Shown: in pieces, positions 25,626 through 36,400 of the stretch | Position numbering within the stretch: position 1 is the first letter of the stretch | How the letters are laid out: each line of letters opens with the position of its first letter | Source: Heteronotia binoei | Lineage: Eukaryota | Assembly (NCBI RefSeq): GCF_032191835.1 | Contig: NC_083231.1 | Span: forward strand, 126,232,001 to 126,296,000 | DNA: 64,000 nucleotides | Reading direction: 5' to 3' | Notes under the pieces: generated by a model | Database searches by the model: none | Told to the model about the DNA's origin: nothing | The model's input: only the letters and a program-made list of their open reading frames with translations | Position numbers and translations under genes: made by a program

Positions 25626-26512
25626 CCTCAAGCCCAAGCCGCGCCGCTCCACGTGGCCGGGGCAGCCCGCTGCATGCTGGGAAGCGTAGTCCGGCCGGCG
25701 GGGTCTCCTCTCGCACTTGCCTCCACGGGGCGGGGCCTTGCCGCTGCAGCAGCCAGGGCGCGTGCCCAGGAAAGCTCAAGCCCCGCCCCCCAGCGGAGGG
25801 CAGCCTCTCCTGGAGGCCCACGTCACCCCTCTCCCTTCCTCCAGCTGAACCCGCCCCGCCCCCTCAGCAACCTCCGCAGAAAAGGGCAGGGCTGCTCACC
25901 TCTTGCCAGGCTGGGCCCCCTAGCTCTTGGGCACAGCCCTAGTCTCCCTGCCCTCCAACCAGCCCATGACTCACATATTCTGCACCGCGGCGAGGACAAA
26001 TGCAAAGGTGAAACTGTGTCCTTTGGATAAATCTTTTATTGCTGCTGGAGCCACACCTCCTTTGCCTGCAAGGGCCTCACGTCGCCTGGCCCAAGCCCTG
26101 CCGCCCCCCCACCCCCAGCAAATTGCCCTATACCCTGAGATGCTTCCCCCCCCACACACACACCTGCACAGCAGCTTCTGGAAGCCAAAGCACAGCTCCA
26201 GGACTCCCCGCTCCCTCCCTCCACAAGCAGAGAGGGGCGCCTTGCAATGACAGCTCTGGAAGCCGCTCCAGGCCCGAGAGCAGAGGGGATTTGGGGATAC
26301 CACCAAGCCAGGACCAATCCCAGCTCTGGCCCCCGCTCCTTTTCCTTCCTGAGATGGGGGGTGGTGGAGGAAGGGGGGTGGCAGGCCAAGGAGACCAGTG
26401 AGATGAGCTTGGCTCCCTCTCTCCTCAGTCCGGCCACAGGAGGTCTCCAACATGCCGCTGCAGGTGCTGAGCGAGAGGGGGTGCTGGTGGGGAGGGGGCT
26501 GCCAGCCGCCAA

Positions 26513-29500
26513 TCACTGCTTGATTTGGCCACCATCTCCTTCGCTGACAAAGCGCTTCCGGCCCCTGAAGGGAAAGGGCAGGAGAGGGGAGGTGAGGGAG
26601 GGGCTGGAGAACCATGCCCCCCGCCAGGAAAGACTTCTGGTGCACCCTTCAACCCCCCCCCCCCCACACACACACACACGGACCGTGCCCGGCAGAGCAC
26701 CATACACCCAACTAAGAAAAGAACAGGCAAGAATTTTATGGTGTCTAAACCCAAGAAGGGATCTGCAGGCTTTCCGTCTGCCCAGGAAATCTCGTGGGGG
26801 CCTTGGGCAGATCTCCCCAGGAGAGGGCCAGAGGGGCTCAGAGACGTATCCCAGCCAGAGCTCCCCTGCCCTGCGCCCCAGCAGATCTTCCCAGTGGCAG
26901 GAGCCTACCGGGCAGGGCAGGCGTCTCTCAGCTGCTTGGTGATGACCCCCTCCTCGAAGCACAAGTCCACCAGGCGCTCCAGGATGTTGTGAGCCAGGGG
27001 GACGTCCAGGCTGATGTCTCCGAGCTCCTCGTACACCCGCTGGAAGCCCTGGAGGCAGGGAGGGGAGGGGTCAGGCAGGGCTGCCAAAGGCTGCAAAGCA
27101 GGCCCCCTCCCTCCCTCCCCCCGGGGTACCGTAACGGCTCACAGGCTCCCTTTCCCGCAGGTGTCATTGGGAGGTGTGGGGGCATCGTCTTCCCCAGGAG
27201 CCTGCCGTCCTCCTACCCTGTTCATCTGGTCCAGCGTCACCAGCCCCGTCTCCCACAGCACCTTCAACAGCTTCATCATCATGGCGACCGCCGTCTCGCC
27301 TGAGGACTCCAGCACCATCACCACCGCCTGGCAAAGAAGCAGAGCTGGAGCGGGGCCTGCAGGGCCAACGCAGGGCAGCCCCTTCCTCCCTCCAGCCGCC
27401 CAGCCCAGGGTCCGCGGGCACACCTCGTAGATGAGCTCGTGGTGGAAGTGGGGTACCTCCAGCTGGCGCAGGCAGCGCTCGGCCTCCGACACTTCTCCCG
27501 AAAGGAGGTACTCACGGAGCAGCAGGTTCATCTGCAGAGGGGGAGGAGAGAAGATGAGGACAGCCCCGCTGAGTTGCCGGGAGAGGTGACGGGATGGGCT
27601 GTTGCCCTGATCCAACATGGCTTCTCTGATGCTCTTATGGGCCCACCGGCTGAGGCCCAGAGAGCTTCCTGCCCATCCCCACATGAACTCCCAAAAGGGT
27701 CTCTGCCCAAGACCCCATCTGATGGCCTAGAAACACAGGGCTCCGATTCATGCCCCCCCCCCAATGCCACATGTGGAGTATGAGTCATTTGGAAATGCCC
27801 AGAAGCCCTTTAACACTGGCGCTGCGTGGGCGGGCACACACACCGTTTGGATCTGCAAGCAAGAAGAAAACCACTCCTCCTGCCCCCCAGAAGGGGTTTA
27901 AATGACGGGTGGAAAGACACGGGGGCTGGATAGCAGGAAACATTTTCCCAGGAAGAGTCAGCTGCCTTGGGAGGGGGTGAGCTCCCCCCACCCCACTGCC
28001 TGTCTTTGAGCAGCAGCTTTTAGAGATCCCAGAGTTGGAAGGGGCCACAAAGGCCATCTAGTCCAACCCCCTGCTCAATGCAGGGTCAGCCAGAGCTGAT
28101 TCCGCAGTTGAACAACTTGGACGGTCAAAAAGGTTTCTCTACTATGCCAATTGTGAGCTTCTCTCCTCTGCTGCCAACAGGACCAGCTCTTCAAATGCTG
28201 AAAGAGTGCCACCCTGTCCCCCTCCTCTTCTCCAGACTGGGCATGCCCAAGTCCCTCAGTCTCTCCTCCCAGGGCTTCTTGCCGGCCTCCTGACCCCTGA
28301 TCCTCCTCATCTGCTCCCGCTCCATTCTGTTTCGTTTAGGCTGATCCTGCATAAAGGGAGGGGGTGGACTCTATGGCCTCTCCAGCCCCTTCCAGCTCTG
28401 GGATTCTGGGGGGCCACAGAAGCTGCCTCCCCCACACCTGATTGCTGGTCCAGTGGAGGTCCCCCCCCCCGGACATCCTTGGTGTCAGTCCCTAAGTGGG
28501 AGAGGTGCAGCAGGCACCCTGGCTAAGCCAAAGGAGAAGTCTGGGCGAAGGTTCTGCAGCAGGCAGCCTGAGGGAGGAGAGGATGGACTGAGCAAGGTGA
28601 GCCCTGCACCCGAGGAGGCCCCTGGAGGGACCCTGGCTGTTATGGTCTCCCCAGGAGTCCTGCAGCGGCCTCAGGCTCTCCAAGGCCAGGAGCTCCTCTG
28701 TTCTGACTGGGAGCCTCTGGACCACTCTCTAAAGCTCAAGCCCTCCTCACCTCCCTGATAAGGTGCTTAACAGGTCTCTGGCCTCCCCCCACGCCCCACA
28801 CGTTGTCCAGGCGGTTGACGTCTTGCTTGATCCGCAGGAGGACAGCAGCGCGATCCAGGGCGGCCCTGCAGGGAGGAGGAGAGGCCTTCAGAAGGGAGCA
28901 GAGAGCAACTGGCCACAGGGCCCCCTTGCTGGCCCGCCTGCCTGGGGCTCCAGCACAGAGGGCCCCCCGGCCCCAGCGAGAGGGAGGGAGGCCGGTCGGG
29001 TCTCTCTCTCACCGAGCATGCTCACAGTCGACCCGCCCTTTGTAGCGCTCGAGGAAGTCGAGGGGCAAGGCGTGGTCAGCCACAGCCCGGGCGATGAACT
29101 GGCCCAGCATCTGCACAGACAGACGGGTGGACAGGGTTCAAAGGGCACGGGTCCTCCAAGCTCCCCGACCCCCGCTCTCCTGCCGGGGCTGGATGCTGAC
29201 CTGCGGGGCTTCCGGCGTGTCAAGGATCAGGTCGGGCAGGTCCTGCAGCATCCCATCGAACGCGGCCGCCATGTCCTCGGGGCTCAGCACCTTCCCCACC
29301 AGGTCCGACAGCAAGCGTGAGGTCAGCTCCCGGTGGCTGGCCTTGCCCTCCAGAGACAGTGCCACGGCCATCGAGGGCACCGCTGCCTTGTGGCCCCCCA
29401 GATTCAGGCCCCGGAGCAGCTCCTGCCAGGAAGGTGGAGGGCATCGGTCAGAGGTGGCACCAGCCCGGCACAAGCGTCCTATTGGCCACCCCCACCTGTG

Positions 29501-30984
29501 TGTTGCTGGGTGGTGGTCTCACCGCTGGGGCTGCTTGAGGGATTGTGCTGCCCCCAAAGGAGGGACACCCCCCTGCAAGTCCAGGCCGAGCCCCTGCGGC
29601 TCATGGGAGGACACCAGCCCCAGCCCCTTGTGCTGAGCACTGGGAAGATGCCAAAAGCCTTTGTGTTGTTCCTCAGTGCTTGCCAAGGGGGCTTGCCTTG
29701 CCCTGCTTGGGGTGGGCAGCAGGGGCAAACATCCCCCCCTCCTGAAACTCAAGGGGGCCCAGGACGTCCCCAACAGATCGCTGTGTGGACAAACATGTCT
29801 TTGCACTCCCCCACCCCTCTTATCTGTTGCTTGGTGATAAGTGATATTTAACCCAACCACTTTGGCTCTCCTCTGCCCCCTCCCAGCTGTGGTTCTGCTC
29901 TCTAGTGGATCACTTGAAGGGGAGAGGTGGGGGGTGCACCCGGAGCAGCAGCAGCAGCCACATCTCCCCACAAAGGACACCTTCCACTCCCCCTGCCCCC
30001 ACTCACCACCACCTCCAGGGGGTCTCCATGCTCAAAGTATTCCAGCACCATGGGGTGCACGTTCTTCTTCAGCTCCTCCTCCTCCAGCTCCGGCACCACT
30101 GTGGCATAGACCGTGTCGCCCTGGGGAGAGGGCACGGAAGGCACTGGGGGGCAGCTCCCCCCTCCCCCCCAGAGCCTGAGCCACGTCACCAGGCTGCGGA
30201 GGGCAGCGGGGCCTGGCAAGACCCGCACCCTCCGGACACAGCATCACAGGGCAGCATGCCTACCTTCACGGGGTGGAGGCGCGGAATTGGGGCGCAAGCC
30301 TCTGACATCAGCTGGAGAGTGGAATGGGCTCCCCCTCCCGAGCGGCCTTGGAGCAGGGGGCTAGACTAGATGGCCTCGGGGGGCCCTTCCCACTGGGGGA
30401 TCGGGGGAGGGCAGTACCTGGGCGGCCTCGTCGTAGTTGGGGTCCCGCGCGTCGGGCTCCTGGTAGGTGTAGACGAGGCCGGGCGCTCCCCAGACGCCTT
30501 TCCCTCCGGCGCCACCTGGGGAGAGGGGGCACGTGTGGGCGGGGCGCGGGGAGGCGGGGGCGGGGGGGCGGCGGGGAGGGGGCGGTACCTTTCTTGGGCA
30601 GGCCGCGCCCCTTGCCCATGCGGGAGCGCCGGTCGTGGCCCTTGGCGGCGGGGGGCGGGCTGCTGGGCTCGGGGCCGGCGGGCTCGGCGCCTCCTTCGGC
30701 CAGGGCGTCGCGGGAGGAGGTGCGGCGCAGGCGGCGCTTGGCCTTGGCCTTGAGGCGCGCCTCGTGCAGGGCCTTCTCGTGGGGGCTCCAGGGCCGCCCC
30801 CCGTCCATCAGCTCTTCGGCCCCCGGCGGGGCGGCCTGCGGGGCACACGGGAGAGAGAGAGCTCAGCGGGGGGGCGCTCTGCCCAGGCCCGAGGGGGCGG
30901 CCGCGCGAAGGCGGGCCGGGGGGGGGGACTTGCCGGCGGGAAGGGCCCGCGCGGCTGCTCGGCCGGGAGCGCGGAGGTGGACAT
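26513..30984 (-). CDS. PDCD4-like paralog (tandem MA3 domains), ~425-451 aa
   Basis: Exons 30835-30589, 30515-30418, 30120-30007, 29422-29201, 29110-29013, 28865-28751, 27531-27424, 27327-27217, 27048-26909, 26564-26513; intact frame, and from the second listed exon onward the boundaries match my recollection of human PDCD4. Motifs: [67 protein letters not shown]. Start is either ATG 30808 or a putative upstream exon 30984-30934 with a GC donor. AATAAA (minus) at 26035-26040. Confidence 0.95.
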
Positions 30985-31440
30985 CGGCGGCGGCGAAGGA
31001 CGGAGGGAGGGAAGCGAGGACGAGCTCTGCAGCCCCGCGGCGCGCCCCGTCCGGGCTCGGGCTTCTTGGGCCTGGCCTGGCCTGGCAGGAAGTGAGCTCA
31101 GAGCCGCCGCCGCCGGAGGAGGAGGAGGAGGAGGAGGAGGCGTGGCGGCCCTGGCACTCTCCGCCCGCCCGCCTGCCTGCCTGCCTGGGGGCCAAGCAAA
31201 GCCCCCCGCCCTGCGAGCGCACACGGCCGCGTCGCCTTTGCGCAGCGATGGCGAGCCAGAGGAGGAGGAGGAGCCCTTTCCCGGGACGCCGCCGGAGCTG
31301 CTCGTCCAAAGTGGACCCTGACGGGGGGGGGGCGCGGTTCTGCCTCTTCTGCGCGGCACCTGCCCCCCCCCCCCGGCCTGCCTGCCTGGAGACGGCACGG
31401 AGGAGCCGGCAACAGCGGCCAGCCTCTGTCAGACACCCCG
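30840..31440 (-). promoter_or_regulatory. CpG island / 5' region of the PDCD4-like gene
   Basis: Dense CpG, (GGA)n tract near 31117-31140, directly upstream of the first confident exon. Confidence 0.6.
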
Positions 31441-31486
31441 TCCCATCGCCTGCTCTGCCCGAAGCCTTCGGAGGACCAGAATGCTG

Positions 31487-32190
31487 TCATAGAATCCTAG
31501 AGTGGGAAGGCACCTCCAGGGCCATCTAGTCCAACCCCCTGCACCAGGCAGCAAACTCACAAACCCCTCCCCCTAAATTCACAGGATCTACATTGCTGTC
31601 AGATGGCCATCTAGCCTCTGTTGAAAGACCTCCAAGGAAAGAGAGCCCACCACCTCCCAAGGAGGAAGCCTGTTCCACTGAGCTCTAAACTCACAAGCAC
31701 CTCCCCCTAAATTCACAGGATCCTCATTGCTGTCAGATGGCCATCTAGCCTCTGTTTCAAAACCTCCAAGGAAGGAGAGCCCACCACCTCCCAAGGAAGA
31801 AGCCTGTTCCACTGACGAATTGCTCTAGCGGCCAGGAAGTTCTTCCTAATAGAATCCTAGAGTTGGAAGGGACCTCTAGAGTAATCTAGTCCAACCCCCT
31901 GCACAATGCAGGAAACTCACAAACACCTCCCCCTAAATTCACAGGATCTTCATCGCTGTCAGATGGCCACCTAGCCTCTGTTTAAAAACCTCCAAGGAAG
32001 GAGAGCCCACCACCTCCCAAGGAGGAAGCCTCTTCCCCTGAGGAACCGCTCTAACAGTCAGGAAGTTCTTCCTCTTGTTGAGCCAGAAACTTCTGATTTA
32101 ATTTCAACCCATTGGTTCTGGTCCTCTTCTGAAGCCACAGAAAACAATTCCACACCATCCTCTAGATGACAGCTCTTCAAGTGCTGAAAG
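31487..32190 (-). mobile_element. Three tandem, partly overlapping CR1 3'-end copies (second subfamily)
   Basis: The block cacaaa..ccccctaaattcacaggatc..gcctgttccactga recurs at ~31555, ~31690 and ~31915. Confidence 0.85.
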
Positions 32191-32221
32191 GAAAAAGGAA
32201 GGAAAAGTTCCCTGTGCAAAC

Positions 32222-32482
32222 ACCAGTCGTTTCCAACTCTGAGGTGATGTTGCTTTCACGTTTTCACGGCAGACTTTTACGGGGTGGTTTGCCATTGCCT
32301 TTCCCAGTCATCTACTCTTTCCCCCCAGCAAGCTGGGAACTCATTTTACCGACCTCAGAAGGATGGAAGGCTGTGTCAACCTCGAGCCGGCTACCTGAAA
32401 ACCCAGCATCCGCCGGGGATTGAACTCAGGTCATGAGCAGAGCTTAGGACTGCAGTACTGCAGCTTTAACATTCTGCACCAC
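32222..32482. mobile_element. Sauria SINE
   Basis: Contains actcattttaccgacctcagaaggatggaaggctgtgtcaacctcgagccggct; second copy at 40385-40648. Confidence 0.8.
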
Positions 32483-32484
32483 GT

Positions 32485-32720
32485 ATCATATCACCTCTCA
32501 GCTGCCTCCTCTCTAGGCTAAACGTGCCCATCTCCTTCGACCTTTCCTCATAGGACTTTGTCTCCAGACCCCTCACCATCTTCGTTGCCCTCCTCTGGAC
32601 CCGTTCCAGCTTGTCTAGATCTTTTTTAAAATGTGGTGCCCAAAAGTGAACTCAAGACTCCAGGCGAGGTCTTACCAGAGCAGAGTAAAGCAATAGCATC
32701 ACTTCATGTGATCTGGACAC
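32485..32720 (-). mobile_element. CR1 ORF2 fragment
   Basis: Similar to 8030-8255 and 42350-42560. Confidence 0.8.
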
Positions 32721-33453
32721 TCGACTTCTGTCATCTGCGCGGGGGGCAGGCTCTGCAGCCAATTTGCCAGTTCCAGCGCACTCCCCGCCCTTGTTGCTGG
32801 CAGCAGTACCCTGACACCCCCCCACCCCAGGCCCAGACCAGGCCAGGCTCATAAGATCTCAGCCCTGCTGAGGACTTGGGGCCCCACCTGGACATTCCAG
32901 GGTTTCTGTGCAGAGGAAACCACCTGGGAACGTCTCTCGCCTCAAAACACCCCCTGGGGAGGGGGGTCACCACACATCAGCTGTGATCGGAGGGCACTCT
33001 CCAGCACCAGCAGCTTCCAGCCGCGCCCACAGAAGAGTCAGAAAGTGTGCATTTTCCCAAGTTTATTCAAAATTAGACGTTGGTGGCTGCAGAAAAGAGG
33101 GATTTTTTTTTCTTTGCTAAAGTGCTGGGAGGAGACCTATGCCAACCCCCCCCCCCCCTTGTCCAGGACACATCAGGAAGAAGCTCCGTCGTGGACCGGA
33201 GGCTGAGGCACACAGGCCCCTTTCAGCCACAGATGCTCCTGCTGCAGCACCAAAGCCAGTCCAGTGGGAAGCAATGGCTCCGAAGGGCCTGGCCAGAGGA
33301 AGGGGGGAGGAGAATCCTGCAGCAGGCCCCACTTGCTACAAGCCTGACTGGTGGAGGGGAGGTGGCCCCCAGGCCCTAGTGCCCACCAGCAGCACACCTG
33401 GCAAAGGCATGGGGGCGGGGCTTGGAGATGTGCTTTCCAAGAGAGCCCTCCCT

Positions 33454-36400
33454 TCAGGGCTCCGTGGTTCTGCACATGCAGGCCAGGCCAGGCACTTTCC
33501 AGCGGTGGCGGCCCCCGTGCAGCCGCAGTGCCAGCCACTCCTGCTGGGGGGCGCTGAGGTAGGTCTCTGGGCTGCTGCCGCCTCCTTGCCCGCGGCTGAG
33601 CAGGTCCCCCGCCTGGCTCCCCCCGGCAGCTCCGGCAGGCTGTCCTTCCAGGCTCTCCAGGCTGTTGAGGCTGCCTGGGCCGCTGCCCAGCGTGTGAATG
33701 CCGTTGTAGGAGCCTGTGGGGCAAGAGGGAAGTCACCAGCCCCGCCTCCACCCAGCGCCACTGGCTGGTGCTTAGCAGGAGTGGGGGAGACACTGCAGCC
33801 CTCCTCTCCTCTCGCTGGGGAGGGTCTTTCACCCCCTCCGGGCCTCGGTTCCACTGGTGTCTTCTTCCTGCAGGGGGAGCTCAAGAGCAAAACCTTCCCC
33901 ATTCTGCAAGGGGCCATAACTATGCCTGGCCCAGAAGATGGGTCCCTCCCTCTCCCTGGGGCCGGCTTCAGAGGACTCACAGCACTGGCAGAGAGCTTCC
34001 CGGGGGTGGCACAGTAGGGAGGTCTTGCTGGGCTGCTGGAGGAGGCAGGCGATGGCGTTGTCCGCCTGCTGGAAGATGCGGAGGGAGAGCACCCGCTGCC
34101 TGCCCTCTGCAGAGAGGCCGGCCTCCTCGCACTGCAGCAACTCCTTGACCAGCTCAAAGTCCCGCTTCAGCTGAAGGGCACCCTGCAGGCTGGGGGGGGG
34201 GGGGCGAGGGCCGGTCTGCAGTCAGCACCATCCGGGCTGGACAGCCTCCTCTCTCTCCCCCGCCCCCCAGCTGGCTGCCTTACCTGAACCTGATCTTCTG
34301 GGCCAGAATGTGCTCCATCCAGGCTTCCAAGAAGGCGGTGGTGACCAGGCCGAGCACCGGCTCCTGTGCCTCGTGGGGCAGCAGCTGGATGCCTTGTAGG
34401 ACCTGGCCCAAGACTGCCTGGGCGGCAGCAGAGGCATACTCGCTGGGGGAGGAAGGCACATCTGCAGGGGCAAGCAGCCAACCGGCACTCAGGGCTCTGC
34501 GGAGTGGGGCCCGCCCAGGCCTCCCTCCCTGCTGGCCCCTGCAAGAATACCTGCTTGGAGGGCGAGGCGCCAGTGCTTGCCCAGTGGCATGGTCTGCCCC
34601 AAGATCTCCGCTGCCATGCGCTTACACTCTGAGGAGAAGAGCCTCAGGGCATCCTTTGCAAAATGCTGGGGGACAGAGAGGGGCATGAGGCTGGCACTTG
34701 GGGGCCACCATCCCCCCCCCTGAAAGGAGAAGCTGCCCCCCTCCCACGATCCAGCAGGTGCCTCTCCTGCTCTCCACTCCAGCTCAAGGGACAGAATGGA
34801 AGAAGCCTGGCCAAGGAAGGGCAGAGCCCAGCCCAGAGCCCCAGCGGAGGCGGTGAGGGAACAAAGGTGCCCGTGGCCAGAACCCAGGGATCCCCTCCAA
34901 GGGCCACGTGCTCACCTGCAGGCTGGTGTCCATGACACTGACTTGCTGGCTCAGCTCCTGCTCCTGCTGAGAGACCAAGGGGCTGGGCTTCTTCCCCCTG
35001 CCGGGCGGGACCGGACTGCTCAGCGCCGCCACCCTGCTCACCTCTCCCTGCAGCAGCTGAAACGAGGAGGAGCAGCGGGGTCTTTCTTCTGGGGAGGCTG
35101 CGGCAAGGGCCCTGTGGTGGGGCTGCCCTCTCCCTCGCATCTGGAGGCCGCAGGCTCCCTCCTTCCCCCCACCTGCTCCGGGGCTCTACTTGCCTGCAAG
35201 TCTCCGTGGGTGACCAGCAGGAACTGGCTGAGGGAGCCGGAGGCCAAGTGCTGTGAGGCTTTGCTCAGGACCCAGTAGCAGGAAGTCTGGCTGGCGGCCA
35301 CCGAGAGGGACAGCAGAGCCGAGCGGCAGCCCGCAGGCCCCAGGAAGCGGTCAGCTGCAGGGGAGGAGGGCCGGTCAGCAGCAGAGGGCCACACGGGGCC
35401 AGGGAGGCAGCGGCCGAGGGACACTCACCGGGGCTCCCAGGGAACCAGGTGTTCAGGCACCGCAGGGAGGAGGCTAAGGGCGGGAAGAGGCTTTGGAGGA
35501 GCTGAGCCGTGTGGCTGCTTGCCACAGCCGTGGTCTGAGACGGCGTGGCCACGCACTTATCGGTGAGGCTGGAGCCCAACACGTGGCAGAAATCTGGTCG
35601 GGAAAAGAAGGCCGTCTGGTGAGCGCCCCCCCCCCAGCACAGGTCCCTTTCCCAGGAGGCACACCAGGCCCATGGCTGCCCCCTCCCCCCACATCAGAGC
35701 ACTGGCCTCTCCCAGATCACCAGGCTCCCCAGCACTCCAGCTGACCTCGGTCCCAGCGCTGGAGGACCCCGCGCACCAGCAGGTGTAGCAAGGAGCCCCT
35801 CAGCTCCTCGGTGCTCTCTTGGGGAAGGCAGGCTGCAAGCAGAGAGAGGGAGAGAGAGGCCAGGATCAGCCAGGCTCACCAGCAGTGAGGATGAGCAAGG
35901 GCCTGGCTTTCCGGGGCAGCGGAGGGGGGGGTGTCCTGGTCTTGGCCGCTGCTTTGGAGCCCCTCTCCTTCCCATGGAGCAGACTCTCCTCCTGCAGGAG
36001 GCCCCCAGAAGCAGCCCCTCAAGGCCCCACAATGCAGGGCCTCTCTCTGGCCCCTGTCGGGGCTGCCTGAAAGGCCTGGCCTCCTGAAGCCCCCGATCGA
36101 TGGGGGCGCTGTCCTGCTCCAGCTGTGCTCCAAACTCCTTGCCACGAGCCAGGCGAGCACCGACCCCCCGCCCTGCGCAAGCCTGGGACCTGCTGCCTGC
36201 CCCCCTGCACCCACCAAGTTGCTGGCCCATCAGGGCTGCTGTCCTTGCTTGGGACTGAGTGGGGGGCGAACGGAGCTCCAGCTGGTGAGCCAGGGCAGTG
36301 GCCGTGGTGCTCCAGAAGAGGGGCCGGTATTGTGCCCAAAGCGCCCCGGCAGCTTCCGAGTAGGAGGCGTCCAGCCAGCGCACGGCCTTCCAAGCGGGCA

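Follow-up and report, generated by a model that had tools for sequence, protein, structure and literature searches.

An expressed and constrained PDCD4 paralog beside MOGS in the gecko Heteronotia binoei, very probably of early vertebrate origin and lost in mammals

Why does a gecko carry a PDCD4-type gene beside MOGS, when PDCD4 in human lies at 10q25 and adjoins BBIP1? The question is raised by a stretch of 64,000 nucleotides (nt) of Heteronotia binoei DNA (contig NC_083231.1, positions 126,232,001 to 126,296,000), hereafter the window, in whose coordinates all positions are given. A first-pass annotation, made from the letters alone, had described an intact second PDCD4 gene there. We consider it very likely that the gene is the gecko ortholog of what is elsewhere annotated as PDCD4-like or pdcd4a, an expressed and constrained PDCD4 paralog that split from the canonical gene in early vertebrates and was lost in mammals. 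The two paralogs would have separated before cartilaginous and bony vertebrates did, most likely through an early vertebrate whole-genome duplication that left one copy in an LBX1/10q24-25-type region (the canonical gene, by BBIP1) and the other in an LBX2/2p13-type region (the window gene, by MOGS). The MOGS-linked copy would then have been retained in ray-finned fishes, coelacanth, lungfish, amphibians and sauropsids, and apparently lost in mammals.

The relatives of the gene fall on two sides, which we call clade A (PDCD4-like, or pdcd4a in fishes) and clade B (canonical PDCD4, or pdcd4b in fishes). An exhaustive search with exon 4 returned 313 relatives. Among the best 120 proteins for a turtle relative used as query (P0006), the name "programmed cell death protein 4-like" is carried by turtles, lizards, snakes, crocodilians, birds, caecilians, salamanders and frogs, and "programmed cell death protein 4a" by gar, coelacanth, bichir, bowfin and teleosts; clade A also includes lungfish. 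Among the matches listed, the closest relative of the window protein comes from Paroedura picta (93% identity). Representatives at 50% identity merged both paralogs under a grouper pdcd4a and yielded no full-length canonical sequence, and a canonical-type fragment (P0047) was then used as query, which brought in PDCD4 of mammals, birds, reptiles and amphibians together with pdcd4b of coelacanth, gar, bichir, whale shark, elephant shark and teleosts. A protein search also finds canonical PDCD4 in the gecko Heteronotia. At least 13 genera hold both genes, including Mauremys, Varanus, Elgaria, Hemicordylus, Falco, Rhinatrema, Ambystoma, Lissotriton, Spea, Latimeria, Lepisosteus, Erpetoichthys and Amia. 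Measured against the window protein, identity is 78% for gar 4a, 62% for gar 4b, 58-59% for PDCD4 of primate (58%) and monitor lizard, and about 52% for a shorter Heteronotia isoform of the canonical protein.

Trees place the window gene in clade A, outside the canonical clade of human-type PDCD4 and pdcd4b. In a 74-row maximum-likelihood tree (LG+C20 with posterior mean site frequencies, quick search), clade A holds 38 rows including the window, with a Shimodaira-Hasegawa-like approximate likelihood ratio (SH-aLRT) support of 96, and clade B holds 32 rows with a support of 100; both clades track the species tree. A 48-row IQ-TREE analysis (LG+F+G4, 1000 ultrafast bootstraps) supports the two splits at 99.8/100 for A and 99.7/100 for B (SH-aLRT/ultrafast bootstrap), and FastTree recovers both clades likewise. 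With these splits, and with so many species holding both genes, the proposal of an ancient sister gene, as opposed to a translocated ortholog, is borne out. The cartilaginous fishes Rhincodon and Callorhinchus lie at the base of clade B, and this position, under an invertebrate root, implies that the duplication predates the split of sharks and bony vertebrates. Turtle and gar proteins are 82% identical in clade A vs 71% in clade B, which suggests that clade A evolves more slowly than the canonical gene; clade A is also slightly nearer than the canonical gene to a crinoid protein. Within clade A, archosaur PDCD4-like nests in squamates beside geckos and not with turtles, and the bird rows fail the composition test; this placement is probably an artefact of GC bias.

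We see no mammal and no cartilaginous fish in clade A, and no mammalian clade A protein among the best 120 for the turtle query, a protein list in which a fast-evolving copy or a pseudogene would escape detection. Since fish 4a proteins at 75-81% identity are listed there, a conserved mammalian or shark member should appear too. The suggested loss on the human lineage is thereby supported. Retention in reptiles, the other half of that suggestion, also holds, but it falls short of the full distribution: nearly all bony vertebrates retain the gene, which is the ortholog of fish pdcd4a.

The gene itself was rebuilt from the sequence by translating the minus strand of 26300-31100 and placing the open segments and their flanks. 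It runs on the minus strand from 30808 to 26513, in ten coding exons and nine introns:

30589-30808, minus strand: coding exon 1, starting at the ATG at 30808; basic N-terminal region, including a run of 27 residues; ends in phase 1
30418-30515, minus strand: coding exon 2, 98 nt; a run of ten residues and, further on, DPNYDEAAQ; RNA joints on both sides
30007-30120, minus strand: coding exon 3, 114 nt; size equal to that in canonical PDCD4
29201-29422, minus strand: coding exon 4, 222 nt; carries the first MA3 domain's core and LPDLILDTP, the acidic loop for eIF4A contact
29013-29110, minus strand: coding exon 5, 98 nt; from the model, RNA joints and exon-size match
28751-28865, minus strand: coding exon 6, 115 nt; linker joining the MA3 domains
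27424-27531, minus strand: coding exon 7, 108 nt; the second MA3 domain begins
27217-27327, minus strand: coding exon 8, 111 nt; from the model, RNA joints and exon-size match
26909-27048, minus strand: coding exon 9, 140 nt; the second MA3 domain ends; acidic loop LGDISLDVP
26513-26564, minus strand: coding exon 10, 52 nt; tail of 17 residues and TGA stop
26335-26512, minus strand: 3' untranslated region (UTR) according to RNA, whose cover stops at about 26335-26356
30200-31600, no strand: CpG island covering the gene's 5' end, GC 0.72-0.81, observed/expected CpG 0.65-0.89

The coding sequence of 1278 nt encodes 425 amino acids with no stop and no frameshift. Its phases fit, all nine introns run GT..AG and have a polypyrimidine tract, and GC at third codon positions is 0.88. 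The CpG island, at about 30200-31600, had been reported by the first-pass annotation as the gene's own, as we also find. Upstream of the ATG at 30808 the frame runs into a stop codon at about 30863 before any further ATG, so the Met at 30808 is the likely start. In this the gecko copy differs from teleost pdcd4a and most PDCD4-like orthologs: its ATG lies inside the equivalent of their second exon, the protein begins about 40 residues later, and 30809-30990 yielded no counterpart of the short first coding exon, which measures 40-46 nt in gar, fugu and canonical PDCD4. Sphaerodactylus likewise starts its protein at an internal Met, and the roughly 40 N-terminal residues are present in other lizards; the NCBI model for Paroedura adds a dubious 585-nt GC-rich first exon instead.

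RNA from four runs of two studies, aligned to 26000-30990, confirms together with the rebuilt model that the ten-exon gene is intact and correctly spliced. Each of the nine introns is matched by an exact joint in RNA contigs and raw reads (CT..AC on the plus strand), at 26563/26908, 27047/27216, 27326/27423, 27531/28751 and 28864/29012 in the 3' half and at 29110/29201, 29421/30006, 30119/30417 and 30513/30587 in the 5' half, and two of the runs each hold a contig of about 1.1 kilobases (kb) spanning exons 10 to 3. Most reads are 95-99% alike to the window, which suggests that the sequenced animals differ somewhat from the assembled one. On the 5' side, reads continue unspliced from the ATG to at least 30990. 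At the other end, cover is near zero below about 26335, with 26356-26359 the endpoint of many molecules, so the transcript seems to stop at about 26335-26359 and not by way of the poly(A) signal assigned to it earlier: the sole AATAAA, at 26040, sits in a nearly uncovered stretch, and we found no AATAAA-type signal near the RNA end at about 26335-26356. The reads also carry a 37-nt insertion relative to the assembly within the 3' UTR, at 26378-26382.

Exon sizes tie the window gene to both clades. Its coding exons measure 220, 98, 114, 222, 98, 115, 108, 111, 140 and 52 nt. Those of gar 4a measure 46, 300, 98, 114, 222, 98, 115, 108, 111, 140 and 52 nt; fugu 4a opens with 46, 270 and 98 nt and continues as gar does, so that the run 98/114/222/98/115/108/111/140/52 is common to teleost pdcd4a and the window. 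Canonical bird PDCD4 has 40, 300, 95, 114, 222, 98, 115, 108, 111, 140 and 61 nt, and seven consecutive sizes (114/222/98/115/108/111/140) are thus identical between the paralogs. Such a run implies shared intron positions and hence a whole gene copied as DNA; with nine introns in place, the gene is not a retrocopy, as had been argued.

As to the neighbouring genes, tblastx against an annotated bird locus places WBP1 at 19.3-21.0 kb and MOGS at 22.6-25.4 kb on one side of the gene, and CCDC142 at 34.0-37.4 kb and TTC31 at about 47.2 kb on the other, in the same order as in the bird; the reported position between MOGS and CCDC142 is therefore correct. At about 59 kb there is an open reading frame (ORF) of LBX2-type homeobox character. 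In the bird Porphyrio the order is TTC31, CCDC142, PDCD4-like, MOGS, WBP1, INO80B and an Anillin/PH gene (probably rhotekin), in Paroedura it is TTC31, CCDC142, PDCD4-like, MOGS and WBP1, and in fugu WBP1, pdcd4a and MOGS, so the linkage to MOGS recurs in all three. Canonical PDCD4 in a bird adjoins BBIP1 instead, and BBIP1/SHOC2 mark the usual surroundings of the canonical gene. The gar pdcd4a locus, with no called neighbours within 10 kb, is uninformative on synteny.

How, then, did the two genes come to lie in two such regions? WBP1/WBP1L, MXD1/MXI1, ADD2/ADD3, VAX2/VAX1 and EMX1/EMX2 are textbook ohnologs. The LBX1/TLX1 and LBX2/TLX2 regions have been described as paralogons that arose in two vertebrate genome duplications, in work that leaves PDCD4 unmentioned (Wotton et al., PMC2446394). 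Whole-genome duplication, which the first-pass annotation had favoured, is on this background the best reading of the paralogs' origin. The age of the split, with sharks inside clade B, agrees with it, and the two copies probably belong to the two blocks, judging by their neighbours WBP1, LBX2 and BBIP1 taken with PMC2446394 and the textbook ohnologs. It is supported by position but not proven.

The alternative that survives best is an ancient small-scale duplication in an early vertebrate, segmental or tandem and then translocated, in which case the paralogon position would be coincidental; we think this unlikely. It gains from the fact that the tree gives the split no closer date than before the divergence of sharks and bony vertebrates, that no third or fourth paralog was seen in the searches for relatives, and that a published argument has the mammalian LBX2/TLX2 block itself moved (PMC2446394). 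Yet clade A keeps WBP1, LBX2 and TLX2-type neighbours while the clade B region holds their ohnologs WBP1L, LBX1 and TLX1 (cf. PMC2446394), the stems of the two clades are of similar length (0.25 for A, 0.26 for B), and the full exon structure is common to both paralogs, all of which count against it. A duplicate specific to reptiles or sauropsids, or a relocated canonical PDCD4, is very improbable. All that can be said for it is that the canonical gene was not sought in this very genome; the window protein groups with fish pdcd4a and amphibian PDCD4-like and not with sauropsid PDCD4, its identity to gar 4a far exceeds that to primate or monitor-lizard PDCD4, the bird and pufferfish copies are equally linked to MOGS, and the gecko Heteronotia carries a separate canonical PDCD4.

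Several points weigh against an early vertebrate duplication followed by loss in mammals. The tree is rooted on four long invertebrate branches, and it samples neither cyclostomes nor any cartilaginous-fish member of clade A, so that the first genome duplication, the second and an early segmental duplication are inseparable in it. The absence from mammals was judged from protein databases and not from mammalian MOGS-CCDC142 DNA. The presence of canonical PDCD4 in this genome is likewise presumed from other geckos and lizards. Human PDCD4, moreover, lies several megabases from LBX1, and its membership of a shared paralogon block is putative.

Selection has kept the gene. Using spliced coding sequences of the Paroedura, gar, fugu and canonical bird genes rebuilt from their loci, we find a ratio of nonsynonymous to synonymous substitution rates (dN/dS) of 0.085 for the window gene against its Paroedura ortholog (94% amino acid identity, synonymous divergence 0.40), 0.13 against gar pdcd4a and 0.12 against fugu pdcd4a. 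That the window holds a decaying or silent copy without function is hardly credible: the shortened N-terminus of the gecko protein and the altered serine-rich stretch after its S6K site could be read that way, but the frame is intact, dN/dS is low, correctly spliced RNA is present in all four runs and the promoter lies in a CpG island.

What might the conserved protein do? Most likely it acts like PDCD4, as a translation inhibitor that clamps eIF4A, a prediction made from sequence because the MA3 contact loops, the N-terminal stretch and the tail are all conserved. The two MA3 domains would hold eIF4A and keep it from acting as a helicase, and the basic N-terminal region would bind RNA and PABP, an arrangement shared with canonical PDCD4. 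Exon 4 alone matches PDCD4 chains in the PDB (2ZU6, 3EIJ, 3EIQ and 8XXL, E about 2e-26). Pfam MA3 (PF02847) finds the first domain in exon 4 (34.7 bits) and the second in exon 9, and gecko orthologs (P0177 and P0162:216-640) show two MA3 stretches at E about 1e-45, as primate PDCD4 does. A full-length alignment of the window protein with canonical PDCD4 has no gap in the MA3 region. The first acidic loop reads LPDLILDTP where human has LPE249LALD253TP, and the second reads LGDISLDVP where human has IPD414INLD418VP; D253, D414 and D418 are thus identical. In the basic N-terminal region, a stretch of 17 residues spanning the junction of exons 1 and 2 is present, a region of 22 residues is retained, and an intact stretch of 15 includes the positions that were mutated to study the binding of RNA and PABP (human K114/K115 and V123/W124, named in PMC4176178). 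The C-terminal motif of 13 residues, with the equivalent of Ser457, is also intact, and the C-terminus is shorter than that of canonical PDCD4, as it does not have the final ...ESY. The eIF4G proteins share the eIF4A-binding MA3 fold (HEAT-2), but they combine one MA3 domain with MIF4G and W2 domains and activate eIF4A, unlike the window protein with its tandem-MA3 PDCD4 layout. Two considerations count against a PDCD4-like action. The position of human E249 is a conservative Asp in all of clade A, and also in gar pdcd4b; E249 and D253 are required for eIF4A binding, and E249A/D253A abolishes it in cells (PMC3089569). In addition, our literature search found no biochemical assay of eIF4A binding for any clade A protein.

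The clearest difference from canonical PDCD4 concerns its degradation signal. After the S6K site, SSRDSGRGDS[VL]SD is invariant from shark to primate in every canonical PDCD4 sampled, whereas the equivalent in clade A is mostly SSRDS[NTA]RESLSE, and DSG occurs in none. The window protein retains the S6K/Akt-type site RRLRRTSS and continues with ten residues of divergent sequence (degron region, 30690-30760), in which the conserved DSxRESLSE of pdcd4a and PDCD4-like reads DALAEGG; of the canonical pairing of an S6K1 site with a DSGxxxS beta-TrCP degron, it therefore has no degron. Sphaerodactylus is altered in this region as well, and Paroedura keeps SARESLSE. In one RNA run (X1), 12 nt are inserted in frame behind 30703 (giving ...RDA-ARDS-LAEGG), an insertion absent from the raw reads of the other study. 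Since clade A is without the DSGRGDS degron, the turnover of its proteins is probably regulated differently from that of PDCD4. We speculate, and hold it to be no better than a doubtful possibility, that clade A is the slower-evolving, less derived paralog and an eIF4A inhibitor beyond the reach of beta-TrCP-mediated removal driven by mitogens and mTOR-S6K1, forming with PDCD4 a two-tier brake whose constitutive tier was lost in mammals. Were this so, non-mammalian vertebrates would run one regulated and one constitutive brake on eIF4A. As for miR-21, both PDCD4 and zebrafish pdcd4a are regarded as its targets, and induction of the zebrafish gene has been reported in miR-21 morphants (PMC3709480). 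In the window 3' UTR (25900-26512), unlike in canonical PDCD4, we found no match to the miR-21 seed, as a 7-mer or a 6-mer.

The gene is already known, being annotated in very many (hundreds of) genomes, with a ZFIN-style name in fishes; the expectation that databases would hold it as a PDCD4-like model proved right, down to the name "PDCD4-like". Our literature search found no paper on the paralogy of vertebrate PDCD4, its age or its loss in mammals. The evolutionary reading is thus apparently unpublished in the literature searched, yet it can be read straight from ortholog databases, and we offer it as a point of interpretation and not as the discovery of a new element. Its interest lies in the large body of work on PDCD4 as a tumour suppressor and eIF4A inhibitor, nearly all of which assumes a single vertebrate gene. 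Most non-mammalian vertebrates have a second copy that is strongly conserved and lacks the canonical degradation signal; this copy may provide redundancy and so bears on knock-outs and on miR-21/PDCD4 experiments in zebrafish, Xenopus and chicken. If the whole-genome duplication is accepted, the pair also offers a clear case of an ohnolog that only mammals have lost.

Some smaller features of the locus deserve mention. The public name of the alligator PDCD4-like protein (P0164) is "transcription factor LBX2 isoform X2", and a model from the godwit Limosa (P0179) joins PDCD4-like and CCDC142 into one protein (Pfam MA3 plus CCDC142); both slips can be put down to the tight spacing of genes here. 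Human MRPL53 lies between MOGS and CCDC142. We recognised no MRPL53-like ORF between PDCD4-like and CCDC142 in the window (30990-34000), only ORFs derived from long interspersed nuclear elements (LINEs), among them CR1/LINE-derived ORFs at 31.5-32.7 kb, and MRPL53 is likewise uncalled in the bird (L002 9797-10001) and Paroedura (L005 8587-10001) loci. Finally, two stretches in intron 6 (27503-27669 and 28004-28170) reach a summed contig depth in the thousands with many loose ends, and are probably copies of an abundant transcribed repeat, outside the gene proper.

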